NCBI GenBank assembly: GCA_950097015.1
Contig: CATNEN010000024.1
Coordinates: 6,510,001 to 6,574,000 of the forward strand
Direction: 5' to 3'
DNA length: 64,000 nt
Origin: Macrostomum hystrix
Lineage: Eukaryota; Animalia; Platyhelminthes
Within the stretch, counting starts at the first letter, position 1. Every line of letters begins with the position of its first letter. The notes under the pieces are model-generated. The model ran no database searches and was not told the origin of the DNA. It worked only from the letters and a program-made list of their open reading frames with translations. Of this stretch, positions 20,501 to 64,000 are shown in pieces. A program made the position numbers and the translations under genes.

Positions 20501-22655
20501 GTTGATGTCACAGTGAGAGTCATTGTTGATGTCACAGTGAGAGTCATTGTTGATGTCACAGTGAGAGTCATTGTTGATGTCACAGTGAGAGTCATTGTTG
20601 ATGTCACAGTGAGAGTCATTGTTGATGTCACAGTGGAGTCATTGTTGATGTCACAGTGAGAGTCATTGTTGATGTCACAGTGAGAGTCATTGTTGATGTC
20701 ACAGTGAGAGTCATTGTTGATGTCACAGTGGAGTCATTGTTGATGTCACAGTGGAGTCATTGTTGATGTCACAGTGAGAGTCATTGTTGATGTCACAGTG
20801 AGAGTCATTGTTGATGTCACAGTGAGAGTCATTGTTGATGTCACAGTGAGAGTCATTGTTGATGTCACAGTGAGAGTCATTGTTGATGTCACAGTGAGAG
20901 TCATTGTTGATGTCACAGTGAGAGTCATTGTTGATGTCACAGTGAGAGTCATTGTTGATGTCACAGTGAGAGTCATTGTTGATGTCACAGTGAAGTCCAT
21001 TGTTGATGTCACAGTGAGAGTCATTGTTGATGTCACAGTGAGAGTCATTGTTGATGTCACAGTGAGAGTCATTGTTGATGTCACAGTGAGAGTCATTGTT
21101 GATGTCACAGTGAGAGTCATTGTTGATGTCCACAGTGAGAGTCATTGTTGATGTCACAGTGAGAGTCATTGTTGATGTCACAGTGAGAGTCATTGTTGAT
21201 GTCACAGTGAGAGTCATTGTTGATGTCACAGTGAGAGTCATTGTGATGTCACAGTGAGAGTCATTGTTGATGTCACAGTGAGAGTCATTGTTGATGTCAC
21301 AGTGAGAGTCATTGTTGATGTCACAGTGAGAGTCATTTGTTGATGTCACAGTGAGAGTCATTGTTGATGTCACAGTGGAGTCATTGTTGATGTCACAGTG
21401 GAGTCATTGTTGATGTCACAGTGAGAGTCATTGTTGATGTCACAGTGAGAGTCATTGTTGATGTCACAGTGGAGTCATTGTTGATGTCACAGTGAGAGTC
21501 ATTGTTGATGTCACAGTGAGAGTCATTGTTGATGTCACAGTGAGAGTCATTGTTGATGTCACAGTGAGAGTCATTGTTGATGTCACAGTGAGAGTCATTG
21601 TTGATGTCACAGTGGAGTCATTGTTGATGTCACAGTGGAGTCATTGTTGATGTCACAGTGGAGTCATTGTTGATGTCACAGTGAGAGTCATTGTTGATGT
21701 CACAGTGAGAGTCATTGTTGATGTCACAGTGGAGTCATTGTTGATGTCACAGTGAGAGTCATTGTTGATGTCACAGTGGAGTCATTGTTGATGTCACAGT
21801 GAGAGTCATTGTTGATGTCACAGTGAGAGTCATTGTTGATGTCACAGTGAGTCATTGTTGATGTCACAGTGAGAGTCATTGTTGATGTCACAGTGAGAGT
21901 CATTGTTGATGTCACAGTGAGAGTCATTGTTGATGTCACAGTGAGAGTCATTGTTGATGTCACAGTGGAGTCATTGTTGATGTCACAGTGAGAGTCATTG
22001 TTTGATGTCACAGTGGAGTCCATTGTTGATGTCACAGTGGAGTCATTGTTGATGTCACAGTGAGAGTCATTGTTGATGTCACAGTGAGAGTCATTGTTGA
22101 TGTCACAGTGAGAGTCATTGTTGATGTCACAGTGGAGTCATTGTTGATGTCACAGTGGAGTCATTGTTGATGTCACAGTGAGAGTCATTGTTGATGTCAC
22201 AGTGAGAGTCATTGTTGATGTCACAGTGAGAGTCATTGTTGATGTCACAATGAGAGTCATTGTTGATGTCACAGTGAGAGTCATTGTTGATGTCACAGTG
22301 AGAGTCATTGTTGATGTCACAGTGAGAGTCATTGTTGATGTCACAGTGGAGTCATTGTTGATGTCACAGTGAGAGTCATTGTTGATGTCACAGTGGAGTC
22401 ATTGTGGATGTCACAGTGAGAGTCATTGTGGATGTCACAGTGAGAGTCATTGTTGATGTCACAGTGAGAGTCATTGTTGATGTCACAGTGAGAGTCATTG
22501 TTGATGTCACAGTGAGAGTCATTGTTGATGTCACAGTGGAGTCATTGTTGATGTCACAGTGGAGTCATTGTTGATGTCACAGTGAGAGTCATTGTTGATG
22601 TCACAGTGGAGTCATTGTTGATGTCACAGTGAGAGTCATTGTTGATGTCACAGTG
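17591..22655. repeat. 5-kb minisatellite of interspersed 24-bp (GTCATTGTTGATGTCACAGTGAGA) and 23-bp (...CAGTGGA) units
   Basis: About 215 copies with two dominant variants. Confidence 0.98.
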
Positions 22656-23021
22656 ATTTGAGCTTACCAGCAGGTCCTAAAAGCAGAATTGATGCCGGCA
22701 TATTCTCGCCAGTGGATGCTGAAACAATTTCTCAGCACTGCAATCTGACTTGATCATTGTAAGACAGTGATGGCACGATGGCCGCACTGGTGAGGGGATT
22801 TTTTAGGATGCAGTGGGGGATTTTAAGCATGCTCCCATCGATAACCGGCCTCCTCGTCTCTCATTGGTCAACTTCCGCCTGAAATCTCGTTCATCTCTCC
22901 AACACATTTTGGACGAAAAATCTTCCTAGCGCTCCACTTGGCTCATCAGCACTCTCATCGTCACACTACTTGTCACACTAGTTATTATACAGTCTATTAA
23001 CTAACTTTTCATCACTGGATG

Positions 23022-29100: not shown

Positions 29101-31011
29101 AGTACAGAAATGCAATAGCCGAACACGAAGGTGGAGCCCAAGCATGAGATCAGTACGGCCAGAGTTATATAGGCCCCTGTTTGATTTGAACATTATTTAG
29201 TAGACAATTATAATGTATTATAATTTGGGACACTATCTAGGGAGAATAAAAATAGTCAGATTCAACTCATCGTATCTAACACTCTTTCATCATATCTAAC
29301 ACTCTTTCATAATATCTAACACTCCCTCATCATATCTAAAATACCCTCATGATATCTAACACTCCGTCATGATATCTAACACTCCCTCATGATATCTAAC
29401 ACTCCCTCATGATATCTAACACTCCCTCATGATATCTAACACTCCCTCATCATATCTAACACTCCCTCATGATATCTAACACTCCCTCATCATATCTAAC
29501 ACTCCCTCATCATATCTAACACTCCCTTATCATATCTAACACTCCCTCATCATATCTAACACACCCTCATCATATCTAACACTCCCTTATCATATCTAAC
29601 ACTCCCTCATCATATCTAACACACCCTCATGATATCTAACACACGCTCATCATATCTAATACACCCTCATCATATCTAACACACCCTCATCATATCTAAC
29701 ACACCCTCATCATATCTAACACACCCTCATCATATCTAACACACTGTCATCATATCTAACACACTCTCATCATATCTAACACACCCTCATCATATCTAAC
29801 ACACTGTCATCATATCTAACACACTCTCATCATATCTAACACACCCTCATCATATCTAACACACTGTCATCATATCTAACACTCCTTCATAATATCTAAC
29901 ACTCTCTCATCATATCTAACACACCCTCATAATATCTAACACTCCCTCATAATATCTAACACTCCCTCATCATATCTAACACACCCTCATCATATCTAAC
30001 ACTCCCTCATGATATCTAACACACTGTCATCATATCTAACACACTCTCATCATATCTAACACACCCTCATCATATCTAACACACTGTCATCATATCTAAC
30101 ACTCCTTCATAATATCTAACACTCTCTCATCATATCTAACACACCCTCATCATATCTAACACACCCTCATCATATCTAACACACCCTCATCATATCTAAC
30201 ACACCCTCATCATATCTAACACACTCTCATCATATCTAACACACCCTCATCATATCTAACACACTGTCATCATATCTAACACACTCTCATCATATCTAAC
30301 ACACCCTCATCATATCTAACACACTGTCATCATATCTAACACTCCTTCATAATATCTAACACTCTCTCATCATATCTAACACACCCTCATAATATCTAAC
30401 ACTCCCTCATCATATCTAACACACCCTCATCATATCTAACACACTGTCATCATATCTAACACACTCTCATCATATCTAACACACCCTCATCATATCTAAC
30501 ACACTGTCATCATATCTAACACTCCTTCATAATATCTAACACTCTCTCATCATATCTAACACTCCCTCATAATATCTAACACTCCCTCATCATATCTAGC
30601 ACACCCTCATGATATCTAAAACTCCCTCATCATATCTAACACTCCCTCATCATATCTAACACTCTCTCATCATATCTAACACTCCCTCATAATATCTAAC
30701 ACTCCCTCATCATATCTAACACACCCTCATCATATCTAACACTCTCTCTTCATATCTAACACTCCCTTATCATATCTCACATGATGAAACACACCTCGTC
30801 AAATGCTACAGGCAGTGAAATTGTTGACTGCCAACTCGTGACAGTGAAATGACAGTCTATATCTCAGAACTGTTATGTATTTTTTCGATTTCTCCATCAA
30901 TTAATGAGCCTTCGATTTTAAGCAAAGGCAAAAAGTATTGATTTGTTACTTACTTGGCGATATTGAGCTCTTTATTTCATCTCTTTTGTTCTTGTCCTCC
31001 TCATTTGCCAT
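26125..31011 (-). CDS. Facilitative sugar transporter (SLC2/GLUT family), 535 aa
   Basis: complement(join(26125..26745,27342..27817,28168..28292,28744..28979,29085..29176,30954..31011)) = 1608 nt, phase-consistent. Motifs FVFGY..VLNSP, DRFGRR, EIVPIRLRGA, PESPRFL, QQLSGIN, EKFGRR, PETK. Confidence 0.9.
26801..27065. mobile_element. Tc1/mariner-type MITE in GLUT intron 5
   Basis: Imperfect TIRs (T/A)CAGTAGA..ACC..GGGG.TATTTCAAATACCCA at both ends, flanked by TA at 26799-26800 and 27066-27067. The right end is shared with 32358-32427. Confidence 0.7.
27115..27300. repeat. 19-bp degenerate minisatellite AAGTTCATTGGTATCATAA
   Basis: About 9 copies in GLUT intron 5. Confidence 0.8.
28315..28728. 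repeat. 22-bp minisatellite GAGATTCAAGGTGAGACTGGGT in GLUT intron 3
   Basis: About 18 copies filling the intron. Confidence 0.95.
29268..30782. repeat. 20-bp minisatellite CATATCTAACAC(T/A)CCCTCAT in GLUT intron 1
   Basis: About 75 copies with recurring variant blocks. Confidence 0.97.
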
Positions 31012-36783: not shown

Positions 36784-39700
36784 TCACTTCTTTCCCTTGC
36801 CTTTATTGTTTTTCTTTTTGCCACCCGGCGTGAAGCCGGTAATGTATTTCTTAGAAATCTGGTAGTTCTCGGTCAGCAGTTTGTACAGGTAGGCCAGCTG
36901 ATCGCCCTGCACCGAGACGACCTCGGCACCGCCAACGCCAGCAGCAGCAGAGCCCTGCTGCACACCCGCACTGACAGACAATGCCCGCTGAACCCGCTTG
37001 GCGAACTGGACCGGATCGACACCAAAGTCTGGCAGGCCGGTCAGCAGGCTGACGGACTTGCCCGCCGCCCTGGATTCCACCCGCATTGAAACGCGCGGAG
37101 CGGCGCCCCGCCTCTCCAGCAGGACGGCGCCGTGTTTGTCCAGCACCCGGTAGCCAGGCGTCATGCAGGCTGAGCACACCTTGAGTGAGCACAAGGATGA
37201 GGAAGGAAATTCGCTGATATTGGAATTATAGCAGAAGCTTCTGACTTCTGACCAGGAGGCCGGGAGTTCGATTCTCAGCCCCAGTGAATTTGAAATGAAT
37301 TTGAACACAAAATACATGTGATTACAAAGATAATCACATTTTATGTGTTATAAGATGTGTATCCGTTATAAGACATGTAAATACTGTGATAAGACAAGCG
37401 AATACCGTGATAAGACATGTGAAAATGTGATAAGACATGTCAATACCGTGATAAGACATGTCAATACCGTGATAAGACATGTGAATATCGTGAAAAGACA
37501 TGTCAATACCGTGATAAGACATGTCAATACCGTGATAAGACATGTCAATACCGTGATAAGACATGTCAATACCGTGATAAGACATGTCAATACCGTGATA
37601 AGACAAGCGAATACCGTGATAAGACAAGCGAATACCGTGATAAGACATGTCAATACCGGCTGAACCGGTATTTTGTAAACCCAGATGATTTCTGTGAAAT
37701 TCTGTGAAATTCTGCGCCAATTTGCAGAGCGCCCATGAGGGCTAGCCTCCAAGGCACAGTGAGATAGTGTACACTGCCTGACGATGAAAACGAACCTGAA
37801 ATAGGCGCTCCCACGGCAGCGAGTCCTCAAGGATTGGCCGGCCGCACTGACTGGCCAGTCGGCTCAGCAGGATGTCCAGGGTCACCTCGCCCTGTCGATC
37901 CGGAGACTGCGAAAGAAATATGGAATTTTTTAGGTAGGGGTTAGTGCAGGGGAATATGTGGGAATGGAAGTGGGGAAGATGTTGGGAGTGGGAGTGGGAA
38001 ATGTGTGGGAATGGGAGTGGGAAAGGTGTGGGAATGGGAGTGGGGAAGGTGTGGGAATGGAAATGGGGAAGATGTGGGAGTGGGAGTGGGGAAGATGTGG
38101 AAATGGGAGTGGGGAAGGTGTGGGAATGGTAGTGGGGAAGGTGTGGAAATGGGAGTGGGGAAGATGTGGGAGTGGGAGTGGGGAAGATGTGGAAATGGGA
38201 GTGGGGAAGGTGTGGGAATGGGAGTGGGGAAGATGTGGAAATGGGAGTGGGGAAGGTGTGGGAATGGGAGTGGGGAAGATTTCAGTATGGGAGTGGGGAA
38301 GGTGTGGGAATGGAAATGGGGAAGATGTGGGAATGGGAGTGGGGAAGGTGTGGGAATGGTAGTGGGGAAGGTGTGGGAATGGAAATGGGGAAGATGTCGG
38401 AATGGGAGTGGGGAAGGTGTGGGAATGGAAATGGGGAATTGATGTGGGAGTGGGAGTGGGGAAGATGTGGAAATGGGAGTGGGGAAGATGTGGAAATGGG
38501 AGTGGGGAAGATGTGGGAGTGGGAGTGGGGAAGATGTGGGAGTGGGAGTGGGGAAGATGTGGAAATGGGAGTGGGGAAGGTGTGGGAATGGTAGTGGGGA
38601 AGGTGTGGGAATGGTAGTGGGGAAGGTGTGGGAATGGTAGTGGGGAAGGTGTGGGAATGGAAATGGGGAAGATTTCAGTATGGGAGTGGGGAAGGTGTGG
38701 GAATGGTAGTGGGGAAGGTGTGGGAATGGAAATGGGGAAGGTGTGGGAATGGTAGTGGGGAAGGTGTGGGAATGGAAATGGGGAAGATGTCGGAATGGGA
38801 GTGGGGAAGGTGTGGGAATGGTAGTGGGGAAGGTGTGGGAATGGTAGTGGGGAAGGTGTGGGAATGGTAGTGGGGAAGGTGTGGGAATGGAAATGGGGAA
38901 GATGTGGGAATGGGAGTGGGGAAGGTGTGGGAATGGTAGTGGGGAAGGTGTGGGAATGGAAATGGGGAATTGATGTGGGAGTGGGAGTGGGGAAGATGTG
39001 GAAATGGGAGTGGGGAAGATGTGGAAATGGGAGTGGGGAAGATGTGGGAGTGGGAGTGGGGAAGATGTGGGAGTGGGAGTGGGGAAGATGTGGAAATGGG
39101 AGTGGGGAAGGTGCGGGATCGTTTACCTGCAGTCCCTCCGCCTTGACATACTCGGTGACAAAGTGGCGCAGCTGTTTGGCGGTGAGGCAGCTGCCCTTGA
39201 CGTGGCCCCATCGCTTGAACAGCTCACCGCTGGTTGCGGTGACGAAGAGCGCATCCTCGATGGTCAGCGGGCCTTCTCCGCCAGCTGAGTCGGATTCGGC
39301 AGCAGCAGCTGATGAGCCGATGACTGGCTCGGAGAACATGAGCTCGGGATGGAGATCGGACTGGAGCAGAGGGTGTCGCCAATTGATGGCCACCACGGAC
39401 AGCACGCCTTTGTCGTTGTGCAGCTCCAGCAGGCCGTCGTCTCGCATGGCTTGCATAAAGAGGCCAAACTTTTTATAGCTGGTGGCTTTCAAATTTAGCG
39501 GTTTATTGTGCGAGTAGCGGGACATGTAGTTGGCCAATAGGGAGCTGCATAGCAACGGCAGGTCTTTGTCGCGAATCTTTTGTATCAAAGAGTGCAGCAG
39601 ACAGTTTAGCAGGTGCCGATCAGAGGCCTGCCGAGGATTTTGAGGATTTCAGCTTTTAGGATTGAATATTGAGGATGTGGGCTGTGTAAGTTCAAATTTG

Positions 39701-40575
39701 AGGATCTGGATTAAGGAAACTGGAAACTGGTGGAAACTGATTTATTTTTTCTTCGGGAATATCGAAAACAGTTACGAGTATCACAGAGTACAAGCAGCTG
39801 TGCTCACATCAACCGACGTCTCGGCCTCGCTTTCGCTGGAATTCCCAGCCTCCGCCGGGTCAGCTGCCTCCGCTGAGGCTCCGTCATCGCGACTTAATAA
39901 GGCGGACAAGGCCAACTCGGACACCTTCTCGGACAGCGGCTCAGAAGTGTCCGGAGTTTCTTCCTCAGCGGCTGGACAGGCGCTCTGGTCGCCTTTCTGC
40001 CACAGGTGATCGCCGATCACGTGATCAATCAGGACCGCTTTGCCCCGACCGCCTCCGGCTGCCAATTCAGCCGCGGTGGCGGCGGTCCGGCCGACGGCGA
40101 CAACCGGGCCGCCGGCCAGCCGCACGCAGCAGAGGCCGCCGCGCGACTCGGCCAGCGACTCCGGCAGCGGCGCCAGCAGGCCGGGCGCCATCAGGTCGGC
40201 GCCATTCTGCAGCACAGGCAGCAGGCCGGAGGCGGCCTCGATTCTAATCCGACCGGCCAGCCGGGGGACGCGCCATAGAGCGTAGACGGTGGGGCTCAGC
40301 CGGCCATCGTCGAAGTCGTAGAGTATCGGCTGGCTGGCGGCGAAGTACACGAAGCCGGTCTGCTCAGTGTGGGTGACAATCTTGGACCGGAACAGATCCT
40401 GCTTCCGGTTGCCGCCCAGCAGGCGCACTTCTGCATCGTCAGCGCCACCGCTGTTGGAGGCGGCGAATGCGTCAGGAAAGCGTCGACGAAGCTCGTCCAG
40501 GAGCTGCCGGCGCTCTGTTGACTTCAGTTTGACGTGCGACTTGACCCGGTAGGGCTTGTGGAAGAGGCCGGGCAT
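36784..40575 (-). CDS. EIF2D: Eukaryotic translation initiation factor 2D (ligatin), 591 aa
   Basis: complement(join(36784..37179,37796..37906,39127..39627,39808..40575)) = 1776 nt, all phase 0. N-terminal FHKPYRVKS..K.TERRQL, PTVYALW, PUA-like LQNGADLMAPG, LNLKATSYKK, and a C-terminal SUI1 domain (RAAGKSVSLLTGL..VQGDQ..Y.I.KKYI.G). Confidence 0.92.
37240..37281 (+). mobile_element. Isolated tRNA-like SINE head fragment in eIF2D intron 3
   Basis: GACTTCTGACCAGGAGGCCGGGAGTTCGATTCTCAGC resembles the head of the 34596-34846 copy (GACTTCTCATTGAGAGGTCGTGAGTTCGAATCTCAGC). Confidence 0.45.
37383..37657. repeat. 21-bp minisatellite GTGATAAGACATGTCAATACC in eIF2D intron 3
   Basis: About 13 copies. 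Confidence 0.93.
37950..39118. repeat. G-rich degenerate repeat (TGGGAG/TGGGGAAG/TGGGAA) in eIF2D intron 2
   Basis: Continuous GGG/GGGG runs on the + strand for 1.2 kb. Confidence 0.95.
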
Positions 40576-47215: not shown

Positions 47216-47484
47216 ACAAAAGGAGCATTAAAGCTCATCATCATTATGTTTCTATTATTAGACTGGACGCACTGGCTAACCTGGCTCATTACCTGGCTAG
47301 CAATTAGTAGCCTTCACTGTTCAAATATGGCTATTCAAGTTTTTTTTCCGAGATCCCCTTCGTGCTTTTATGCATCGTACTTATTCACTGAGTGACCGAG
47401 TGCACTCTCCTCTAGCTCTCCCATCAGAGTTAGTGCAGCAGCTCTCACGCGATCTTTAAGGATACTTTGCACAGCCAGTATATT

Positions 47485-48768
47485 GATCGGGAGGACGTTC
47501 ACTCATTGATCTGGAAGTAGCTCACTGATTGATCTGGAGGAAGTTCACTGATTGATCGGGAGGATGTTCACTGATTGATCTGGAGGATGTTCACTGATTG
47601 ATCTGGAGGATGTTCATTGATTGATCTGGAGGAAGTTCACTGATTGATCTGGAGGATGTTCACTGATTGATCTGGAGGATGTTCATTGATTGATCTGGAG
47701 GTAGTTCACTGATTGATCTGGAGGATGTTCATTGATTGATCTGGAGGAAGTTCACTGATTGATCTGGAGGATGTTCACTGATTGATCTAGAAGTAGCTCA
47801 CTGATTGATCTGGAGGAAGTTCACTGATTGATCTGGAGGATGTTCACTGATTGATCTGGAGGAAGTTCACTGATTGATCTGGAGGATGTTCACTGATTGA
47901 TCTGGAGGAAGTTCACTGATTGATCTGGAGGTAGTTCACTGATTGATCTGGAGGTAGTTCACTGATTGATCTGGAGGTAGTTCACTGATTGATCTGGAGG
48001 ATGTTCACTGATTGATCTGGAAGTAGCTCACTGATTGATCTGGAGGAAGTTCACTGATTGATCTGGAGGATGTTCACTGATTGATCTGGAGGAAGTTCAC
48101 TGATTGATCTGGAGGATGTTCACTGATTGATCTGGAGGAAGTTCACTGATTGATCTGGAGGTAGTTCACTGATTGATCTGGAGGTAGTTCACTGATTGAT
48201 CTGGAGGTAGTTCACTGATTGATCTGGAGGTAGTTCACTGATTGATCTGGAGGTAGTTCACTGATTGATCTGGAGGAAGTTCACTGATTGATCTGGAGGT
48301 AGTTCACTGATTGATCTGGAGGTAGTTCACTGATTGATCTGGAGGTAGTTCACTGATTGATCTGGAGGTAGTTCACTGATTGATCTGGAGGTAGTTCACT
48401 GATTGATCTGGAGGTAGTTCACTGATTGATCTGGAGGTAGTTCACTGATTGATCTGGAGGAAGTTCACTGATTGATCTGGAGGTAGTTCACTGATTGATC
48501 TGGACGACGTTCACTTATTGATCTGGAAGTAGCTCACTGATTGATCTGGAGGAAGTTCACTGATTGATCTGGAGGAAGTTCACTGATTGATCTGGAAGTA
48601 GCTCACTGATTGATCTGGAGGAAGTTCACTGATTGATCTGGAGGATGTTCACTGATTGATCTGGAGGAAGTTCACTGATTGATCTGGAGGTAGTTCACTG
48701 ATTGATCTGGAGGAAGTTCACTGATTGATCTGGAGGAAGTTCGCTGATTGATCTGGAGGTTCTTCACT
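47485..48768. repeat. 23-bp minisatellite GTTCACTGATTGATCTGGAGGA(T/A)
   Basis: About 55 copies. Confidence 0.97.
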
Positions 48769-49928: not shown

Positions 49929-52900
49929 TTATTCTTCCACGGTGCTAGTGTACGTTGTCGTGCGGGTGATGAACACGCTGCCGTCAGCCTCCTTCTTGCA
50001 CTGACACTTGCCAGCAGAGCCGTGGACGTTGCAGTTGAACTCTGTACCAGAGCTGGACGCGGTCACGCAGCTGCCATCGGCACTGAGACAGTCGGAGCGG
50101 TAGGGCCGGCTGGAGCTGGGGTCAGTGCCGCACTTGAAGTGGAAGCACATCTGCTCAGCCTTGCTCATCCACGACTGGCCTGGCTTGTACCTTTTGTTGG
50201 TGTACGGATCGACGCAGAGTCGTTCAACGTGAGTTGAGGTCTCCCAGCCGTCGGAGCCTGAGCCGCTGCCACCGCTGGTATCCGTACTGGTGCTGGTCTC
50301 AGTACTGGTCTCCGTACTGGTGCTGGTCTCAGTACTGGTGTCCGTGCTGGTGCTGGTCTCGTCGGTGCTGGAGCTCGAGCCGCGATCAGGGACGATGAGT
50401 CCAGTGCCAGCGCACTTGGAGACACGCACGAACCTGCATCCGCAGTCTGCAATGCCAATGTTTCGACATGCCATAAAAGAGAGAGATAATAAATATTTCC
50501 ACAAACTTTTCAATGAAGAATTCTGAATTCAAAACTTACGGCCAGACAACACCTTGTCCAACTCTCCGTGAGATCGCGGGAACACCCCGAAGCTAATGTC
50601 ACCGGCAACGGCCTTCTTGATGAAAGTCATGACCTGCGGTTGGCGGTTCGCGATTTTCGAGTAAAGATGAGGTTCGACCAACAAAAGTACAAGTATTACA
50701 CGACAGACACCTGGTTACAAATATGTCACCTTATTAGCGAGGCCCATTCCGAGCTGGGAGAATCGACCGCCAGTCTTGGAGGCGATGGCCTTGTACACAC
50801 CGCCATCAGTTCTGCACAGGTTTCCGGAGGCCACGGTGAAGAAGCGGATCTTCTTGCGGGCCAGAGTGTTGGCCACCGAGTCGCGAAGGTGGGCATCCTT
50901 GGCGGACGCGTCAGTGAACAGGAACAGGACGGAGTTCTGGTCCGCAGCCGCGGCGGCATCGCGCACACCTTGCAGGGCCATCTCAGGACAGTCACCACCG
51001 CCGTGAGGTCGGACGCGGCTCAGGAATGAGCGGACCTGGTGGATGTTCTTCGTCTTGAGCACGTTCCTCCTGTAGGGATCTCCGTAGGTGGCGATCACAT
51101 AGTTGTCGAAGCGCTTGTTGGCGGACAGAATGCTGTTGATGTGGTTCCTGACGGCGTTGATGACGCGGCCCATGCTGCCAGTGTCGTCGATCACGAAGAT
51201 GAGCGAGCCCTTCTTGCTGGGTCGCGGGCTGACAGGTCGGCAGGAGCAGACCTTCTTCTTGATGGATATTTCATGGCTGCCGCTCGGACAGCCCTTGCTT
51301 GGCGGTCGGACGGGCGGTCGGACGGGCGGTCGGACAGGTGGCAAAACGCCACCAGTTCCTACGCACCTGTGGCCCTTGACGAAGCGGCATCCGCAACCTG
51401 AAAAGTAAAAAATGTTTTAGTTATGCGACAAGGCAAATTCAATCCTGATGATAAAGGCGCACTTCTTTAGAAATCACCCATATTTCTTGCGCAACTCCGC
51501 ACAATGTTGGTGGAAGGTGCAAAGTAGCCAAGGCTCACTAGAATGTCTGCAGTGCGCAGGTATTTAGTCACACGAACCAGGGCAAGTTACAAGGATTTGA
51601 AACCGAGCAGCAAAGAACTTTTCATTTCGTCAATTAGGTAAAAAACGGTCGATAAATAGAGCCGCTATCCAAAGGCCACTGATCAAATCCACAAATTCAA
51701 CTTGTTTTCGAAAACTCTAAACTTTAAAATATACTTGCAGTTGTAGTTACTTAGGTATTTGCAGCTAATGCTTAGCGCTTCCAAAGGCAGTGTTGAGTCT
51801 GTTGAGTCTATTGAGATTTTAGTCTATGGACTGGGGAGACGCGGCATCCACAACAATATCTACCCCAGAAAATGCTGGTACCTTTTTTTCAGCTGGGCGA
51901 GCTGAAGCAGACTGAAATCAACCCCTTGATGCCAAATGAATTTTTTGTCATAGAATGTGAGTCGATTTCATGAAGCCCTCCCTCGCTGAGAATTCTGAAC
52001 CTAAAACACCTGTGCTACCATCACGACAGCCTTCACAAATAATTAAAAAACTTTCTGGAAATCAAAGCTGCAAACCTGCGGCACAATCACTTACGGCCAG
52101 CCAGCACTCGCGACAGCTCGCCGGCGTTACGCGGGAACACTCCGAAGCTGACGTCACCGGCGACGGCCTTCTTAATGAACGACATCACCTAAAAAGCAGA
52201 TATTGAATTTAATATATGTAGCTCATTACTTTTCTTTAGACTTTGATAAACTCAGAAAGGAAATCCGGTACATACGCTGTTAGCGAGGCCCATTCCGAGC
52301 TGGGAGAATCGACCGCCAGTCTTGGAGGCGATGGCCTTGTACACACCGCCATCAGTTCTGCACAGGTTTCCGGAGGCCACGGTGAAGAAGCGGATCTTCT
52401 TGCGGGCCAGAGTGTTGGCCACCGAGTCGCGAAGGTGGGCATCCTTGGCGGACGCGTCAGTGAACAGGAACAGGACGGAGTTCTGGTCCGCAGCCGCGGC
52501 GGCATCGCGCACACCTTGCAGGGCCATCTCAGGACAGTCACCACCGCCGTGAGGTCGGACACGGCTCAGGAATGAGCGGACCTGGTGGACGTTCTTCGTC
52601 TTGAGCACGTTCCTCCTGTAGGGATCTCCGTAGGTGGCGATCACATAGTTGTCGAAGCGCTTGTTGGCGGACAGAATGCTGTTGATGTGGTTCCTGACGG
52701 CGTTGATGACGCGGCCCATGCTGCCAGTGTCGTCGATCACGAAGATGAGCGAGCCCTTCTTGCTGGGTCGCGGGCTGACAGGTCGACAGGAGCAGACCTT
52801 CTTCTTGATGGAGATCCTTCGGGTTCCGCTCGGGCAGCGCTTGCGCGGCGGTCGGACGGGCGGTCGGACGGGCGGTCGGACAGGGGGCAAAACGCCACCA

Positions 52901-55586
52901 GTTCCTACGCACCTGTGGCCCTTGACGAAGCGGCATCCGCAATCTAAAAAGAGATCGAGACGTTAGTCGAGTTCAACGTGGTTGTACTCGTTCATCAAGG
53001 ATAGTGTTTGGAGAATTGTAGTTTCTTGTTCTTCCTTCCCAATTTATTTTTCATATCTTATATTTTGTGTGTTTTGTTTTACAGAATTTTCAATTAGAAA
53101 TAGCTCATTATTCCCTTTTGTGCATTGAAACAACACAAAAAGGTAGAAATTGCTGTCTCGATCAGGTAAGTGTCATTTATGATCGCAATCTCCAAGAGAG
53201 AGAGACCTCAAAAATGTTTTTGCTATGATTTAGAATCCTAAATTTAATAAAAGGTGAATAGGTCGCTTTCTGCAAATATATATACCAGTATTTAAGCCCA
53301 CACAATGCAAGTGAGGGGCAATAAAAACTCAGATAATAATTTAAACACACAGCACAACATGATCCGCTACTAAATTAAGCCGAATTGCACAAGTCTTCCA
53401 GTGACGAAGCATCAAAGTGTATTGAGTGAGTCTTTAGTGCCAGTCAGCGCATGAATTGGGTGAAATGTACTCTCATATAAAATGTTTAGTTAAGGCACTA
53501 CGGGAGGCTCAATCAGGGACTCCGTAGCGAATGATTGACGATTCAAGAGGATCATTATATTTACTGCAGTAAACAGAAATCAGGGCAACACTTACGGCCA
53601 GCCAGCACTCGCGACAGCTCGCCGGCGTTACGCGGGAACACTCCGAAGCTGACGTCTCCGGCGACGGCCTTCTTAATGAACGACATCACCTAAAAAGCAG
53701 ATATTGAATTTAATATATGTAGCTCATTACTTTTCTTTAGACTTTGATAAACTCAGAAAGGAAATCCGGTACATACGCTGTTAGCGAGGCCCATTCCGAG
53801 CTGGGAGAATCGACCGCCAGTCTTGGAGGCGATGGCCTTGTACACACCGCCATCAGTTCTGCACAGGTTTCCGGAGGCCACGGTGAAGAAGCGGATCTTC
53901 TTGCGGGCCAGAGTGTTGGCCACCGAGTCGCGAAGGTGGGCATCCTTGGCGGACGCGTCAGTGAACAGGAACAGGACGGAGTTCTGGTCCGCAGCCGCGG
54001 CGGCATCGCGCACACCTTGCAGGGCCATCTCAGGACAGTCACCACCGCCGTGAGGTCGGACACGGCTCAGGAATGAGCGGACCTGGTGGATGTTCTTCGT
54101 CTTGAGCACGTTCCTCCTGTAGGGATCTCCGTAGGTGGCGATCACATAGTTGTCGAAGCGCTTGTTGGCGGACAGAATGCTGTTGATGTGGTTCCTGACG
54201 GCGTTGATGACGCGGCCCATGCTGCCAGTGTCGTCGATCACGAAGATGAGCGAGCCCTTCTTGCTGGGTCGCGGGCTGACAGGTCGGCAGGAGCAGACCT
54301 TCTTCTTGATGGAGATCCTTCGGGTTCCGCTCGGGCAGCGCTTGCTCGGTGGTCGGACGGGCGGTCGGACGGGCGGTCGGACAGGTGGCAAAACGCCACC
54401 AGTTCCGACACACTTTCGGTCCTTGACAGTCCGGCATCCGCAATCTATGGAAGCAAGAATAGGAGAGCATCTTGCGAATGAATCGAAAATTCCAATCACT
54501 TTTTTTTCAATCGCATTGGAATTCGTGGATTATGTTATGAATGGAAAAAACCGTATATTACAATTTTAGGTAGGTACAAGGTATGACGTAAAGCTCGATG
54601 CCCACAGCCATTGTTTCGACTCAAGGTATTGCAAAGATAAAAACAACACTTACGGCCAGCAAGCACCCGAGACAATTCACCGGGGTTACGCGGGAACACT
54701 CCGAAGCTGACGTCTCCAGCAACTGCCTTCCTGATGAACGTCATCACCTGCAATTAAAGTGACGATATAGTTTTGAATACAAAGTTGTCTTAACGACGAT
54801 GCAGAGCCGAACTTTTGTTAAGGTAAAGGAAATCCGGTACATACGCTATTAGCGAGGCCCATTCCGAGCTGGGAGAATCGACCGCCAGTCTTGGAGGCGA
54901 TGGCCTTGTACACACCGCCATCAGTTCTGCACAGGTTTCCGGAGGCCACGGTGAAGAAGCGGATCTTCTTGCGGGCCAGAGTGTTGGCCACCGAGTCGCG
55001 AAGGTGGGCATCCTTGGCGGATGCGTCAGTGAACAGGAACAGGACGGAGTTCTGGTCCGCAGCCGCGGCGGCATCGCGCACACCTTGCAGGGCCATCTCA
55101 GGACAGTCACCACCGCCGTGAGGTCGGACACGGCTCAGGAATGAGCGGACCTGGTGGATGTTCTTCGTCTTGAGCACGTTCCTCCTGTAGGGATCTCCGT
55201 AGGTGGCGATCACATAGTTGTCGAAGCGCTTGTTGGCGGACAGAATGCTGTTGATGTGGTTCCTGACGGCGTTGATGACGCGGCCCATGCTGCCAGTGTC
55301 GTCGATCACGAAGATGAGCGAGCCCTTCTTGCTGGGTCGCGGGCTGACAGGTCTGCAGGAGCAGACTCGTTTGTTAGTGGTGACCGGCCGACTTCCATCG
55401 GAGCATCCTAGAGAAGAAGGTGAGAAAAATAACAGGCATAAATTTGACAGCAGGTAAATTCTCTTGTTCATACAGTACCCTAGCTAATTAAACAGCATCT
55501 TTCTGCAACTTACTTGGCATGCTTCGCCCCTCGGTCACCGCCAGGATGACCAGGGCCAGCGCCAGAACTTTCAGCAGCTGACGCAT
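49929..55586 (-). CDS. Secreted protein with four tandem hemicentin/VWA7-type VWA modules, an S/T-rich stalk and a C-terminal Cys-rich (VWC/FnI-like) domain, 1177 aa
   Basis: complement(join(49929..50446,50540..50633,50730..51397,52095..52188,52276..52943,53596..53689,53777..54444,54654..54747,54845..55407,55514..55586)) = 3534 nt, all GT-AG and phase-consistent. Signal peptide MRQLLKVLALALVILAVTEG. Each module has SLIFVIDDTGSM, GGGDCPEM and LFLFTDASAKD. Confidence 0.88.
51822..52030 (-). mobile_element. Degenerate CORE-SINE copy in a VWA-gene intron
   Basis: GTCTATGGACTGGGG..TACCCCAG..ATGCTGGTACC..CAGCTGGGCGAGCTGAAGCA aligns to 14930-15020. Confidence 0.6.
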
Positions 55587-57384: not shown

Positions 57385-59678
57385 GTCCAGTCTGTTGTAA
57401 TAGCAGCAACCCACACTCTTCTAGTCTGTTGTGATAGCAGCAACCCACACTCTTCTAGTCTGTTGTGGGAGCAGCAACCCACACTCTTCTAGTCTGTTGT
57501 AATAGCAGCAACCCACACTCTTCTAGTCTGTTGTGATAGCAGCAACCCACACTCTTCTAGTCTGCTGTGATAGCAGCAACCCACACTCTTCTAGTCTGTT
57601 GTGAGAGCAGCAACCCACACTCTTCTAGTCTGTTGTGAGAGCAGCAACCCACACTCTTCTAGTCTGTTGTGATAGCAGCAACCCACACTCTTCTAGTCTG
57701 TTGTGAGAGCAGCAACCCACACTCTTCTAGTCTGTTGTGATAGCAGCAACCCACACTCTTCTAGTCTATTGTGATAGCAGCAACCCACACTCTTCTAGTC
57801 TGTTGTGAGAGCAGCAACCCACACTCTTCTAGTCTGTTGTGGGAGCAGCAACCCACACTCTTCTAGTCTGTTGTGAGAGCAGCAACCCACACTCTTCTAG
57901 TCTGTTGTGAGAGCAGCAACCCACACTCTTCTAGTCTATTGTGATAGCAGCAACCCACACTCTTCTAGTCTGTTGTGAGAGCAGCAACCCACACTCTTCT
58001 AGTCTGTTGTGATAGCAGCAACCCACACTCTTCTAGTCTGTTGTGATGGCAGCAACCCACACTCTTCTAGTCTGTTGTGATAGCAGCAACCCACACTCTT
58101 CTAGTCTGTTGTGAGAGCAGCAACCCACACTCTTCTAGTCTGTTGTGAGAGCAGCAACCCACACTCTTCTAGTCTGTTGTGAGAGCAGCAACCCACACTC
58201 TTCTAGTCTGTTGTGAGAGCAGCAACCCACACTCTTCTAGTCTGTTGTGATAGCAGCAACCCACACTCTTCTAGTCTGTTGTGATAGCAGCAACCCACAC
58301 TCTTCTAGTCTGTTGTGAGAGCAGCAACCCACACTCTTCTAGTCTGTTGTGAGAGCAGCAACCCACACTCTTCTAGTCTGTTGTGATAGCAGCAACCCAC
58401 ACTCTTCTAGTCTGTTATGAGAGCAGCAACCCACACTCTTCTAGTCTGTTGTGATAGCAGCAACCCACTCTTCTAGTCTGTTGTGAGAGCAGCAACCCAC
58501 ACTCTTCTAGTCTGTTGTGAGAGCAGCAACCCACACTCTTCTAGTCTGTTGTGATAGCAGCAACCCACACTCTTCTAGTCTGTTGTGATGTCAGCAACCC
58601 ACACTCTTCTAGTCTGCTGTGATAGCAGCAACCCACACTCTTCTAGTCTGTTGTGAGAGCAGCAACCCACACTCTTCTAGTCTGTTGTGAGAGCAGCAAC
58701 CCACACTCTTCTAGTCTGTTGTGAGAGCAGCAACCCACACTCTTCTAGTCTGTTGTGATAGCAGCAACCCACACTCATCTAGTCTGTTGTGATAGCAGCA
58801 ACCCACACTCTTCTAGTCTGTTGTGAGAGCAGCAACCCACACTCTTCTAGTCTGTTGTGAGAGCAGCAACCCACACTCTTCTAGTCTGTTGTGATAGCAG
58901 CAACCCACACTCTTCTAGTCTGTTGTGATAGCAGCAACCCACACTCTTCTAGTCTGTTGTGAGAGCAGCAACCCACACTCTTCTAGTCTGTTGTGAGAGC
59001 AGCAACCCACACTCTTCTAGTCTGTTGTGATAGCAGCAACCCACACTCTTCTAGTCTGTTATGAGAGCAGCAACCCACACTCTTCTAGTCTGTTGTGATA
59101 GCAGCAACCCACTCTTCTAGTCTGTTGTGAGAGCAGCAACCCACACTCTTCTAGTCTGTTGTGAGAGCAGCAACCCACACTCTTCTAGTCTGTTGTGATA
59201 GCAGCAACCCACACTCTTCTAGTCTGTTGTGATGTCAGCAACCCACACTCTTCTAGTCTGCTGTGATAGCAGCAACCCACACTCTTCTAGTCTGTTGTGA
59301 GAGCAGCAACCCACACTCTTCTAGTCTGTTGTGAGAGCAGCAACCCACACTCTTCTAGTCTGTTGTGAGAGCAGCAACCCACACTCTTCTAGTCTGTTGT
59401 GATAGCAGCAACCCACACTCATCTAGTCTGTTGTGATAGCAGCAACCCACACTCTTCTAGTCTGCTGTGATAGCAGCAACCCACACTCTCCTAGTCTGCT
59501 GTGAGAGCAGCAACCCACACTCTTCTAGTCTGTTGTGATAGCAGCAACCCACACTCTTCTAGTCTGCTGTGATAGCAGCAACCCACACTCTTCTAGTCTG
59601 CTGTGATAGCAGCAACCCACACTCTCCTAGTCTGCTGTGATAGCAGCAACCCACACTCTTCTAGTCTGTTGTGATAGC
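57385..59678. repeat. 34-bp minisatellite AGTCTGTTGTGA(T/G)AGCAGCAACCCACACTCTTCT
   Basis: About 67 copies. Confidence 0.97.
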
Positions 59679-60279
59679 AACATACTACCAAATAAAGTAC
59701 TGTAATCATGTGTCAATTTTTTTGAATAATGTATCTTACACCGATAGCTTCTGAAACCAATTTAATATCGAAGACAAGTATACAGGCATTTCACCTTCAG
59801 CATTCAGTAACAAGCCATTGTTAGTGTTGATATTAAAAAACTAAAAAACTACATAGCAGCGAAGCAGAAGAGCAATATAGCAAGCAGACATGATGGGACC
59901 ATAATCTTGTAATGCAAATATTAGTAAGAAATATAGATCACGAAAATACTGATAAAAACATATGAAGATTCGCGGCAAGCACAGCGAATTCATTCATACG
60001 GCCAAAGTGGATAAAAGTGCATTGTGAAATAACAGGAAAGTTTCTGGTACAGGGTACGCTACAGTTTAAAATCTTAATTAAAAAATACAAAGATTTGAAT
60101 CGACATTAAAATAGCATCTATTAGGAAAAAATAAAAGAATAGGAACCTTATTTTGTGCATTAGTGGAACTAATAATCGAAAATTGGTTGAACTAATGCTC
60201 AAAAACTTATCAAAGAATAGCGTGTGGCTCATATTTAGGCGATTTCAAAACATTCTAGCTCGTACTTAGAGTCGTCGAA

Positions 60280-61335: not shown

Positions 61336-63962
61336 TTAAGCCCCCAGTCGAAGCGTCAAAGCGGGTTGGAAAATTGAAACAGAGGCGCCAGGCGCTGTAG
61401 CATTGGTCAATGGCGTCGTCAGATGGTCAGCGGTGACCAAAGCCATGCAGATGATAGTCCAGATGAGCATGGCTAGCACAACTAGCCAGTGGCCAAACGG
61501 GCTGACATGCAGTGGAGCATATCTGGAGTCGGCATCGAGCGGCGGCAGCTGAGATGCAGCCCGCCGCCTACTATAGTACAGCAGAGCAGCTGGCACTGCG
61601 TATTGCAACAGGGCGCCAGCGTAGGAGCCGGTGTAGTCCACCAGCATGCCCACACTGCTCGTGGCGAAGGCTACGGCCACTGGCGGAGCCACCGCTAACA
61701 GGGGAAACAGCAGCCTCTCCGTGATCCAGTGGAAGCTGCGGCCGCTACGGCGAGTGAACCCCAGCAAGGCTTTGAGATTGCCGCGCAGTGTGATGGCGAT
61801 GATGGGAAATGAGGTGCTCAGCGCAAACACTGGGAACAGCGCCAGGAAGTAACGAATCGGCTGCCACACCTGCGATTGATCGAGAAGCTGGCTTGCTCAG
61901 GTTTGGGCTGGGAATCTGGGATCAGCTGGGGATCTGAGATCAGGTGGGGATCTGGGATCAGCTGGGGATCTGAGATCAGGTGGGGATCTGGGATCAGCTG
62001 GGGATCTGGGATCACCTGGGATCTGAAATCAGCTGGGGATCTGGGATCAGCTGGGGATCTGGGATCAGCTGGGGATCTGGGATCAGCTGGGGATCTGGGA
62101 TCAGCTGGGGATCTGGAATCAGCTGGGGATCTGGAATCATCTGGGGATCTGGGATCAGCTGGGGATCTGGGATCAGCTGGGGATACGAGATCAGCTGGGG
62201 ATCTGAGATCAGCTGGAGATCTGGAATCAGCTGGGGATCTGGGATCAGCTGGGGATCTGGGATCAGCTGGGGATCTGTGATCAGGTGGGGATCTGGGATC
62301 AGCTGGGGATCTGGGATCACCTGGGATCTGAAATCAGCTGGGGATCTGGGATCAGCTGGGGATCTGGGATAAGGTGGGATCTGGAATCAGCTGGGGATCT
62401 GAGATCAGGTGGGGATCTGGGATCAGCTGGGGATCTGGGATCACCTGGGGATCTGGGATCAGCTGGGGATACGAGATCAGCTGGGGATCTGGAATCAGGT
62501 GGGGATCAGGGATCAGCTGGGATCTGAGATCAGCTGGGGATCTGGAATCAGCTGGGGATCTGGAATCAGCTGGGGATCTGGGATCAGCTGGTGATCTGAG
62601 ATCAGGTGGGGATCTGGAATCAGGTGGGGATCTGGGATCAGCTGGGATCTGAGATCAGCTGGGGATCTGGAATCAGGTGGGGATCTGGGATCAGCTGGGG
62701 ATCTGGGATCAGCTGGGGATCTGTGATCAGCTGGGGATCTGTGATCAGGTGGGGATCTGGGATCAGCTGGGGATCTGGGATCAGGTGGGATGCTCAAACC
62801 TCGGGATCTGCGGAAGGCTGTAAACTAAATGTAAGTCTCTGACCTGTACCGCCAGTTGCCGACCTGGTTGAAAATTGAGCGTGTACAAATCCTCCAAATC
62901 CTTGAACGCGAATATGCCTGTGTAGGCCAGGCTGAGGTAGAAAACCAGGATTAGCGAGAAGTCGGCCAGCAGCACCAGACGGAGGCGCCGCTTCGGCGAC
63001 ATCGGCGTCAGTAGAGCCGGCAGCGAGTGATGGCACATGAAGGAATACACAGAGGCGCCAAACAGCTGTGGAATGTGCGCCCAGCTCACAGGCTTCGGAG
63101 TTCCATTGCCCTTGCCGTTGGCCAGTGTAATAGAGGCCAGGGCTAGCATCACACCGAAGGCTAGCCACCTGGACAGCGTAGTTGCCACCTGCAGGTATTT
63201 AGTCTTCTGCACATTGAAGAAGGCGAACGGACAGACCAGCAGGCTAAACGCGGCCACAAATATTCGATAGGCGTCGCCTCTGGTGAGGCCGGATTTCGGC
63301 GACCAGCAATAATCCGAGTCGGTTAGATTGTCTATGCTGGCATTCAGCCAGGGATTATAAGAACAGGCCACATCCCTGAGGGATTTCGGTACTGCCACGG
63401 CGTAGATTGCCAGATCGCCGTACAGATAGACGCAGATCACAGCGTAGAACGCCACGATCAGGTAAGAGTTGAAGTACATGTGAGCCATCTGGCCCAGTTC
63501 AAATCGGCGCGTAATTTCAAACGGCAGCAATTCGGACGCGCTGCAGCTAGCAGTATTATTATTACTACTATTAGTAGGAGCCGAGCGGCCGGGATAGCGC
63601 AGCTCGTCGGTTTCGTTGCCAAAACTGGCGGCGGGACTGCGAATCAGAGGCGAGTTCTCACTATCCGTGACGTCATTGTTACTTAGGGCGGCGTCAGCTG
63701 ATTGGCGACGCGCCGACTGTATCAAGCGCTGTTCCTCTTCGCGCTTCACTAAAGCATTAGTTGTAGACATGACTTCCACTACGTAGCTAACTGTGATGTA
63801 GCTGAGGAAGGCCAGGCAGAAGATTGTCACACCGCCAGCAAGCCATCCAGCACTTGCGAACACCCTTGGCAATGTCAGAGCGCCGGTGCCAACTATCAGA
63901 TTGAATATGAACACCATTCCAGTCAGGGGACTGTAGACTGGCTCTGCTGAACTGACAGCCAT
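61336..63962 (-). CDS. TMEM104: Transmembrane protein 104 (amino-acid transporter fold), 548 aa
   Basis: complement(join(61336..61869,62850..63962)) = 1647 nt. FNLIVGTGALTLP..F..AGW, ELGQMA, YLYGDLAIYA, FFNVQKTKYLQ, VYSFMCHHSLP, LYTLNF and FPVF..STSFPIIAITLR.N motifs. Acceptor-like cccttgcag lies 8 nt before the ATG. Confidence 0.92.
61912..62790. repeat. 18-bp minisatellite GGGATCAGCTGGGGATCT in the TMEM104 intron
   Basis: About 48 copies filling the intron. Confidence 0.96.
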
Positions 63963-64000
63963 GCCTACCACTGCAAGGGAGAGCATATAGGAAAGTGTCT

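Follow-up and report, generated by a model that had tools for sequence, protein, structure and literature searches.

In the Macrostomum hystrix window analysed here, a stretch of 64 000 nucleotides from a single contig, an intact single-copy gene encodes a putative secreted polycationic protein built from four VWA_4 beads. The most probable function, at a rough probability of 0.55, is to cross-link, multivalently, glycan-rich secreted or extracellular material or to serve as one of its structural components; the glue, mucus or egg-coat role considered in a preliminary description of this DNA is a plausible candidate. By its modules and closest relatives, the gene is a member of an uncharacterized, Macrostomum-expanded family of predicted secreted VWA_4 proteins with one to four modules.

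The gene consists of 10 exons on the minus strand (55586..49929; Table 1), with GT-AG boundaries in all introns. The spliced coding sequence is open over 3534 nt and translates to 1177 amino acids plus a stop codon (126.6 kDa). Translation starts from the ATG at 55586; 4 codons before it, the frame is closed by a TGA. Thus, splicing and translation confirm the previously given length of 1177 amino acids, but for a 10-exon model, not for one continuous ORF. The intron phases are symmetric, a single exon encodes the putative signal peptide, and the inner modules have neither a start nor a signal exon of their own. A search of the 220-Mb assembly finds the gene in a single copy, with a last exon that is unique in the genome. 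The genes adjoining the locus encode ordinary transporters and translation factors and provide no functional context. Database searches and structure predictions were run exon by exon, whereas the joined 1177-aa model was used for translation, composition and local BLAST against fetched proteins.

Table 1. Exons of the four-module VWA_4 gene (coordinates in the window).
Feature	Coordinates	Strand	Content
Exon 1	55514..55586	-	ATG and signal-peptide-like N-terminus MRQLLKVLALALVILAVTEG|RS; 73 nt; ends in phase 1; GTAAGT donor
Exon 2 (A1)	54845..55407	-	N-terminal 3-Cys hairpin (C26, C40, C42) and VWA_4 domain 1; Pfam E 7e-37
Exon 3 (B1)	54654..54747	-	Module 1 tail, 31 aa, VMTFIRKAVAGDVSFGVFPR...
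Exon 4 (A2)	53777..54444	-	CGC-x8-C hairpin closing module 1, (PVRP)3, C-x13-CSC hairpin, VWA_4 domain 2
Exon 5 (B2)	53596..53689	-	Module 2 tail
Exon 6 (A3)	52276..52943	-	Hairpin, (PVRP)3, hairpin, VWA_4 domain 3 (Pfam)
Exon 7 (B3)	52095..52188	-	Module 3 tail
Exon 8 (A4)	50730..51397	-	Hairpin, (PVRP)3, hairpin, VWA_4 domain 4; GTGACA donor
Exon 9 (B4)	50540..50633	-	Module 4 tail; most diverged B exon
Exon 10	49929..50446	-	Last CGC-x8-C hairpin, acidic S/T-rich stalk, orphan 8-Cys C-terminal domain, stop codon

The N-terminus is, by inspection, of the classical n/h/c signal peptide type (MRQLLK, VLALALVILAV and TEG|RS, with T-E-G at positions -3 to -1), so that the product is predicted to be secreted; the paralogues start with similar signal-peptide-like sequences. 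A motif scan of the model finds DDTGSM, GGDCPE, its longer form GGGDCPE, and FTDA four times each, along with four CGC-x8-C hairpins, four C-x13-C-S-C hairpins (three by regular expression and the first one from the cysteine positions) and three (PVRP)3 spacers, the short, basic and proline-rich joints between modules. The spliced model and Pfam agree with the architecture proposed earlier, namely, a signal peptide (by inspection), four VWA domains, (PVRP)3 repeats, an S/T-rich stalk and a Cys-rich end. The whole protein has a pI of 10.24, with 183 Lys and Arg residues, 82 Asp and Glu residues and 40 cysteines, for a net charge of about +100. The earlier characterization as K/R-rich holds for the four modules, each of which is strongly basic (net charge +22 to +27), but not for the stalk and the C-terminal domain.

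In Pfam, the four large exons all match the family VWA_4 (PF25106), with individual E-values of 7e-37 to 1.2e-36 and scores of 126–127 bits (gathering cut-off, 27 bits); for comparison, the classical VWA family PF00092 scores 33–34 bits. VWA_4 is the best family in all four cases, in line with the hemicentin/VWA7 type initially proposed from motifs. The AlphaFold2 model of exon 4 (pLDDT 88.7) comprises two β-hairpins and a VWA fold, for which Foldseek reports probability 1.00 to the VWA structures of integrin β-I, ITIH1, α2δ, CLCA1 and CMG2. The D-D-T-G-S stretch (DxTGS) aligns with DGSQS, the DxSxS MIDAS motif in a VWA domain of collagen VI α3; a functional MIDAS is defined by the DxSxS, Thr and Asp metal-coordinating set together with cation binding. 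Across an alignment of 44 family sequences, D135, C136, E138 and D162 do not vary, and C194 is conserved in at least 90%; the β4 Asp of the TDA motif is invariant in this alignment. The conserved motif set of VWA_4, namely DxTGS, GGGDCPE with its Cys, TDA and a second conserved Cys, is present in all four domains. A search of PDB sequences with one module yielded a chance match only.

The four modules are highly unequal in their degree of divergence along the sequence. The VWA cores are ~99–100% identical in DNA (0–4 differing codons per 474 nt), exon B is 73–86% identical (exon B4, 73–75% to the others), and introns of 209, 652, 697 and 93 nt are unalignable with one another; every copy has its own linker variants and its own exon B. 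Exons B2 and B3 differ at 1 of the 94 nucleotides, and the short intron before each is identical. In the phylogenetic tree, the four modules form one clade, the sister group to both modules of the M. lignano protein P0001. The locus is a clear-cut instance of concerted evolution that is restricted to the stretches of exon encoding the domain, with linkers, small exons and introns diverged.

Near-identity of the cores is also a typical cause of assembly errors, and the preliminary description named separate genes or an assembly duplication as a finding that would overturn it. That the locus is such a duplication, a mis-join of separate genes or a set of pseudogene copies is, however, extremely improbable because the introns are unalignable between modules and the assembly contains only one copy of the gene; it was rejected. 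The unique linkers and distinct B exons, the open frame through all 10 exons, the canonical splice sites, the symmetric phases and the lack of a start or signal exon in the inner modules argue in the same direction. The M. lignano proteins likewise read from module to module: P0001, an orthologue fragment that is 77% identical and has the same exon junctions, runs module-tail-hairpin-linker-hairpin-module, with A-to-B and B-to-A junctions as in the present gene.

Each VWA_4 domain is flanked by 3-Cys hairpins, C-x13-C-x-C on the N-terminal side and C-x-C-x8-C on the C-terminal side. The vicinal cysteines were originally thought to cross-link chains, which now appears doubtful: hairpins are found on both sides of the VWA domain throughout the family, single-module secreted proteins included. 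The hairpin cysteines more likely form intramodule clasps, a reading drawn only from cysteine parity, which fits. Such disulfide clasps would rigidify each VWA_4 bead, and covalent multimerization, if any, would more likely involve the C-terminal 8-Cys domain.

The S/T-rich stalk (approximately residues 1027–1075, ~50 aa) is acidic, with a net charge of -9, and is underlain by a 30-nt tandem repeat at 50275–50360. The last 100 residues contain 8 cysteines. No relatives of this 8-Cys domain were detected in the M. hystrix genome, among PDB sequences or by a word search (exon 10 residues 70–171; proteins of 94–299 aa covered), the best ESM Atlas value (0.76) was below the useful level, and the single-sequence AlphaFold2 model of exon 10 is uninformative (pLDDT 47.9). 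All Pfam matches of exon 10 are below threshold. The match to New_glue (19.5 bits vs a cut-off of 31) was dismissed because it is caused by the low-complexity TSTSTE repeat; the one to Fn1_2 (E 0.056) is only a hint.

The family is defined by a VWA_4 domain capped by C-x(13-19)-C-x(1-5)-C and C-x-C-x(8-9)-C hairpins, an exon-B-type tail and closest relatives in the genus, all of which are found in this protein. At least 54 related exon matches are present in the M. hystrix genome, clustered with 2–3 modules per cluster, and M. lignano, the source of all named close public relatives, encodes uncharacterized proteins with 2–4 VWA_4 matches; such tandem proteins are common in both species. A scallop and a midge have proteins with two copies as well. 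The notion that this type of VWA domain is normally found once per protein is therefore not supported, and the one that tandem copies have no recognized counterpart is wrong in detail. The best-stretch identity to the nearest non-flatworm relatives is ~27–44%. Domains found beside VWA_4 in the relatives include WSC, SUEL lectin, LCCL and VWD, and the VWD-bearing relative also has ~3000 aa of K/R/C-rich sequence. The positive charge is not constant in the family because some members are neutral (pI 6.7–8.6). In the literature searched on Macrostomum and on rhabdites, including the in situ hybridization screens of tail and cement glands and the supplements of PMC5977470 and PMC4490696, no mention of this family was found.

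As a cross-linker, the protein would act extracellularly, in gland secretion, mucus or matrix. Each of the four MIDAS-type sites would bind an acidic ligand residue via a divalent cation, and the overall charge would in addition attract polyanions electrostatically, for example, glycans that are sulfated or acidic. A precedent for the electrostatic part is the cohesive protein Mlig-ap1 of Macrostomum, which is extremely rich in Lys and Arg and has been proposed to act through charge interactions with glycans (PMC6410801). A more far-reaching version, which we consider speculative and rather unlikely, is that these proteins are an undescribed class of polycationic flatworm cross-linkers, with VWA_4 beads that are clasped by disulfides and carry a MIDAS, in which exon-limited gene conversion keeps the cores identical, such that one chain would offer four equivalent metal-dependent sites, and which, together with the lectin-, WSC- and VWD-bearing relatives, would form a cohesive network in a macrostomid secretion. 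The secretion in question would be mucus or rhabdite, adhesive, egg-shell or seminal material, and a VWA-based network would be a second solution beside the glue proteins ap1 and ap2 with their vWD domains and KR repeats.

Alternatively, the protein could be a hemicentin-like tissue matrix organizer that anchors tissues at basement membranes or at cell–cell and cell–matrix junctions and is not released from glands. This reading is compatible with the VWA_4 type, which is that of the extracellular matrix protein hemicentin (PMC3707829), and with the result of the family profile search, where the sole match among PDB sequences is the α3 chain of collagen VI, a multi-VWA matrix protein. It is nevertheless doubtful: the galactose-binding-like domain, the Ig array and the EGF/fibulin end are all absent, the genus-level expansion and fast evolution of the family are unusual for core matrix organizers, and the extreme positive charge and the lectin- and WSC-bearing relatives suit secretions better. 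The same charge, the many paralogues produced by lineage-specific expansion and the carbohydrate-binding SUEL-lectin and WSC domains of relatives would also fit a defence protein that binds microbial surfaces or serves as an antimicrobial or agglutinating factor in mucus. The charge, however, is distributed over folded domains rather than amphipathic peptides, no link to immunity was found in the sequence or the literature, and the maintenance of four identical VWA cores speaks more for an endogenous ligand that does not change than for an arms race, so a defence function is improbable.

If the cross-linker reading is correct, macrostomid flatworms, which serve to study reversible bioadhesion and secretions as a model, have an unstudied family of VWA_4-based polycationic matrix proteins. 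What VWA_4 does is little understood, even in hemicentin (PMC3707829), and obscure in VWA7 as well; a small, repetitive secreted protein that looks highly expressed and consists almost entirely of this domain would provide a convenient handle on its ligand. If that reading fails, the protein is just another lineage-specific secreted multi-VWA protein. The concerted evolution of the domain-coding exon parts makes the locus a clear example in its own right.

Among known systems, the closest are the VWFA domain-containing proteins of M. lignano (A0A1I8GPA0, that is, P0001; A0A1I8I2M0, P0012; A0A1I8J8Z7, P0168; BOX15_Mlig027525g6, P0170), none of which has a described function. They share the VWA_4 modules, the 3-Cys hairpins, the exon-B-type tail and the tandem layout, and many are basic and have signal peptides. 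The public entries are fragments or contain 1–3 clear modules, with four Pfam matches over the 823 aa of P0168, and all of them lack the (PVRP)3 spacers, S/T stalk and 8-Cys C-terminal domain of the present protein. Hemicentin-1/2 (him-4, fibulin-6/8) and VWA7 (NG37/G7c) have VWA_4, DxTGS and GGGDCPE in common with the protein described here and are secreted, as is predicted for the latter, but their one VWA_4 precedes a galactose-binding-like domain along with Ig, EGF or other modules, which are absent here. In hemicentin, the Ig array is long and the C-terminus is of TSP1/G2F/EGF/fibulin type (PMC3707829; Pfam of P0017 and P0020). VWA7 has a VWA7_N domain and an Ig_VWA7/galactose-binding-like domain; neither is matched here, although the same Pfam search detects the VWA7-specific domains in the hagfish relative P0017. 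At E<=1, all exons match VWA-type families only, apart from the sub-threshold matches of exon 10. Orthology to hemicentin or VWA7 was rejected, VWA_4 alone being in common.

A gel-forming mucin or VWF-type polymer was rejected as well, given that VWD, C8, TIL and cystine knot (CTCK) domains are lacking and the S/T stalk is just ~50 aa long, where such polymers have a long PTS region. Mlig-ap1 and Mlig-ap2, which are marked by expression in adhesive gland cells, belong to the same genus and are secreted, as the present protein is predicted to be; they were rejected on Pfam domain content. These are giants of 5–15 kaa with KR repeats, ap1 combining vWD/C8/TIL with C-type lectin and EGF domains, and ap2, LDL and TSP1 domains with long central repeats; VWA domains are not reported in them, and their domain set is not found here. 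Collagen VI α3, matrilins and cochlin/vitrin are secreted multi-VWA chains that serve as multivalent matrix connectors, as proposed for the present protein. These classical proteins use PF00092, the present protein shares no collagenous, coiled-coil or EGF parts with them, and the hairpin caps and polycationic character belong to this family, not to theirs. Cochlin combines LCCL with VWA domains, and one M. lignano relative that joins LCCL with VWA modules resembles it.

The predicted four-VWA protein is encoded by ten exons on the minus strand, with borders obtained by reading the reverse strand and then tested by a script. All introns in this model are bounded by GT...AG, and the joined exons form an open frame of 1177 codons followed by a stop, with an in-frame TGA four codons 5' of the ATG. 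The length given in the preliminary description, 1177 amino acids, is confirmed, but not as a single ORF, because these residues come from the spliced ten-exon model; the sequence features listed there (DDTGS, GGGDCPE, CGC, CSC, (PVRP)3, the S/T stalk and the Cys-rich end) are all present in the spliced translation. The predicted product has a mass of 126.6 kDa, a pI of 10.24, 183 K+R versus 82 D+E, and 40 cysteines. Its N-terminus, a short basic stretch followed by eleven hydrophobic residues, T-E-G and R-S, is predicted by inspection to be a classical signal peptide. An alternative in-frame ATG at 55471 within intron 1 (window 55408-55471) would yield a hydrophobic N-terminus, MNKRIYLLSNLCLLFF..., reading directly into exon 2; because it overlaps the acceptor's polypyrimidine tract, this ATG is probably a coincidental by-product of that tract, and secretion is predicted from either start, the ATG at 55586 or that at 55471. 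Across the whole model (49929-55586, minus strand), there are no N-x-S/T sequons in 1177 residues, though Ser and Thr together number 189, and the S/T stalk is the sole obvious candidate for glycosylation.

Exons of the four-VWA gene and genes around it (window positions; exon borders were tested by script)
Feature	Position	Strand	Remarks
Exon 1	55586-55514	-	start and signal sequence here alone
Exon 2	55407-54845	-	large exon, module 1
Exon 3	54747-54654	-	exon B, module 1
Exon 4	54444-53777	-	large exon, module 2 (A2)
Exon 5	53689-53596	-	exon B, module 2
Exon 6	52943-52276	-	large exon, module 3
Exon 7	52188-52095	-	exon B, module 3
Exon 8	51397-50730	-	large exon, module 4
Exon 9	50633-50540	-	exon B, module 4
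Exon 10	50446-49929	-	last exon
Neighbouring genes	36787-40575 and 61339-63986	-	Pre-PUA + SUI1 (DENR/eIF2D-like) translation factor; amino-acid transporter
More distant neighbours			sugar/MFS transporters and a C2H2 zinc-finger exon

None of these neighbours is out of the ordinary, and they provide no functional context for the VWA_4 gene. Long minisatellite arrays, built of 13-34-nt units, abound in the window (1-64000; for example, 8378-10816, 17592-22656, 29266-30781, 47482-48759 and 57389-59679), the biggest being a 24-mer in 214 copies; two arrays bracket the gene, and many of the mechanical ORFs in the window are minisatellite arrays only.

Database searches, Pfam included, and fold predictions took single exons as input, the joined protein being used for script-based analysis alone. 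The four large exons all match VWA_4 (PF25106), with E-values of 7e-37 to 1.2e-36 and scores of ~126 bits where the cut-off is 27; the classical VWA family reaches only 33-34 bits. VWA_4 is the hemicentin/VWA7 subtype to which these domains had previously been assigned, here matched four times. The AlphaFold2 model of exon A2, built from an alignment of 44 family sequences (A1), is confident (mean pLDDT 88.7) and consists of two beta-hairpins, the CGC-x8-C and C-x13-CSC segments, ahead of a Rossmann-like VWA domain, with low confidence for the (PVRP)3 stretch between the hairpins. Foldseek searches with this model returned generic VWA structures only, at 11-18% identity (integrin beta I-like domains, ITIH1, the calcium-channel alpha2delta subunit, CLCA1 and CMG2), and no solved structure of a close relative. 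The sole PDB sequence match of the family profile is collagen VI alpha3, the first MIDAS motif of which, D-G-S-Q-S, aligns with DdTgS; in A1, the invariant positions are the D, C and E of GGGDCPE and the D of TDA, a second Cys being nearly invariant. The 'MIDAS-like' label is thus upheld at the level of the motif, the metal-binding sites themselves being putative.

Each VWA domain of the family is preceded and followed by a three-cysteine hairpin, including those in the first and last modules and in single-module secreted proteins such as P0005. Two cysteines within the VWA domain are conserved far outside the family (A1) and, for this reason, presumably pair with each other. The 40 cysteines are made up of 3+2+3 in each of the four modules and 8 in the tail: pairing of the N-terminal hairpin with the C-terminal hairpin of its own module leaves no Cys over, and pairing across the junctions would leave the first and last hairpins stranded. 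The N- and C-termini of the VWA fold are adjacent, and in the VWF A domains an N-to-C disulfide closes the domain. From this parity and the adjacent termini, we infer that the hairpins form intramodule disulfide clasps and that (PVRP)3 is a true spacer, a reading at odds with the disulfide cross-linking that had been proposed for CGC and CSC.

The last exon encodes the final CGC-x8-C hairpin, an acidic S/T-rich stretch (net charge -9) based on a 30-nt repeat, and 100 residues with eight cysteines. This eight-cysteine domain has no second copy detectable by genome search in the same genome, no relatives in a word search among proteins of 94-299 aa, no useful match in the ESM Atlas and no match among PDB sequences; for the last exon, Pfam offered only a hint of Fn1_2, below threshold, and a New_glue match due to low complexity. 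The AlphaFold2 model of this exon from a single sequence (pLDDT 47.9) is too poor for use.

The family to which the protein belongs is uncharacterised and has expanded within the genus. Searched in six frames, the same genome yielded 54 related exon matches clustered on at least eight contigs; in the seven clusters that were read, 2-3 same-strand modules lie ~1 kb from one another and carry the hairpin motifs described above. In one cluster, which has three modules or more, a paralogous exon (L016:1616-2749; G000:C1:8495616-8496749, minus strand) encodes a WSC domain (carbohydrate-binding; E 6e-20) in one open frame with a VWA_4 module capped by both hairpins. A word search with one module as the query found Macrostomum lignano proteins up to 77% identical. 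The exhaustive representative search, run to test the claimed absence of relatives, returned only 11 representatives at E<=1e-30, and those named at E<=1e-44 are all uncharacterised M. lignano 'VWFA domain-containing proteins'. According to Pfam, P0012 (A0A1I8I2M0), P0170 (BOX15_Mlig027525g6) and P0171 have three VWA_4 matches each, P0168 (A0A1I8J8Z7) has four within 823 aa, P0013 combines two with LCCL, and P0027 combines one with a SUEL lectin domain. P0014 (M. lignano PAA86075.1; 4112 aa), another polycationic secreted protein, combines a signal peptide with two capped VWA_4 modules and one VWD, followed by a region of ~3000 aa (K+R 26%, Cys 8%); its N-terminus has a counterpart in the M. 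hystrix genome (L019, G000:C11:3451764-3453882). Many family members have a pI of 10-11.7, and some are neutral (6.7-8.6). Beyond flatworms, two-copy proteins come from scallop, midge (with a chitin-binding domain) and hagfish (a VWA7-like model), and the weaker matches include bacterial proteins. Given the 2-4 matches in M. lignano and two in scallop, midge and hagfish, the earlier view of one such VWA domain per protein goes too far; even so, none of the relatives examined has a larger arrangement than this protein's four complete capped modules and tail.

Three lines of evidence argue that the modules belong to one gene: all large exons are entered and all small exons are left in phase 1, the start and signal sequence are confined to the first exon, with no internal module having its own, and P0001 (A0A1I8GPA0), a 77%-identical M. 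lignano orthologue fragment, reads continuously through module, tail, CGC hairpin, basic linker, CSC hairpin and next module, with identical junctions. Unique flanks around every module copy exclude an assembly duplication, which the preliminary description, along with separate genes, had allowed. The same observations make it highly improbable that the locus is an artefact. The 220-Mb assembly contains the gene once. Between copies, the 474-nt VWA core of the large exons differs by 0-4 codons; outside it, the 5' linker part of these exons is variable, the introns are unalignable and differ in length (209, 652, 697 and 93 nt), and exon B (94 nt) has 73-86% identity among modules 1, 2/3 and 4, with synonymous changes (8-11) equal to or exceeding non-synonymous ones (3-7). 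Modules 2 and 3 are exceptional in having an identical short intron and a nearly identical exon B. In the maximum-likelihood tree, the four window modules form one clade (96/89) and the two modules of P0001 its sister clade (99/94), the two joining at 96/94, which argues that the modules are homogenised within each species and that the multi-module architecture is common to both.

The homogenisation (50730-55407) ends a few bases from the donor site of the large exon: compared with the near-identical VWA core, the short intron is 46-67% identical and exon B, ~90 nt away, 73-86%, modules 2 and 3 sharing both. In the four large exons, concerted evolution is restricted to the 474 nt that encode the VWA core, and the M. 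lignano fragment has the same pattern of within-protein identity.

No mention of the family was found in the literature and supplements searched. The architecture, the relatives with lectin, WSC and VWD domains, and the precedent of charge-based cohesion by the adhesive protein Mlig-ap1 (PMC6410801) together favor, with a probability of roughly 0.55, a predicted role outside the cell, in a glycan-rich secretion or matrix, as a multivalent cross-linker or structural component. Each chain would present four identical predicted metal-dependent sites, to which a strong electrostatic attraction to polyanions would be added. That the protein instead organises an internal matrix, in the manner of hemicentin, seems unlikely, and a role in defence less likely still.

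The preliminary description is borne out as to the sequence features and in part as to their interpretation. As a putative cross-linker or structural component, the protein is a candidate of value to researchers of bioadhesion and secretion, and the gene offers an entry point to the little-understood VWA_4 domain. The known glue proteins of Macrostomum, Mlig-ap1 and Mlig-ap2, differ from it in their domains, and the family is a kind of the well-known 'secreted multi-VWA matrix protein', neither categorically new nor unique in architecture.
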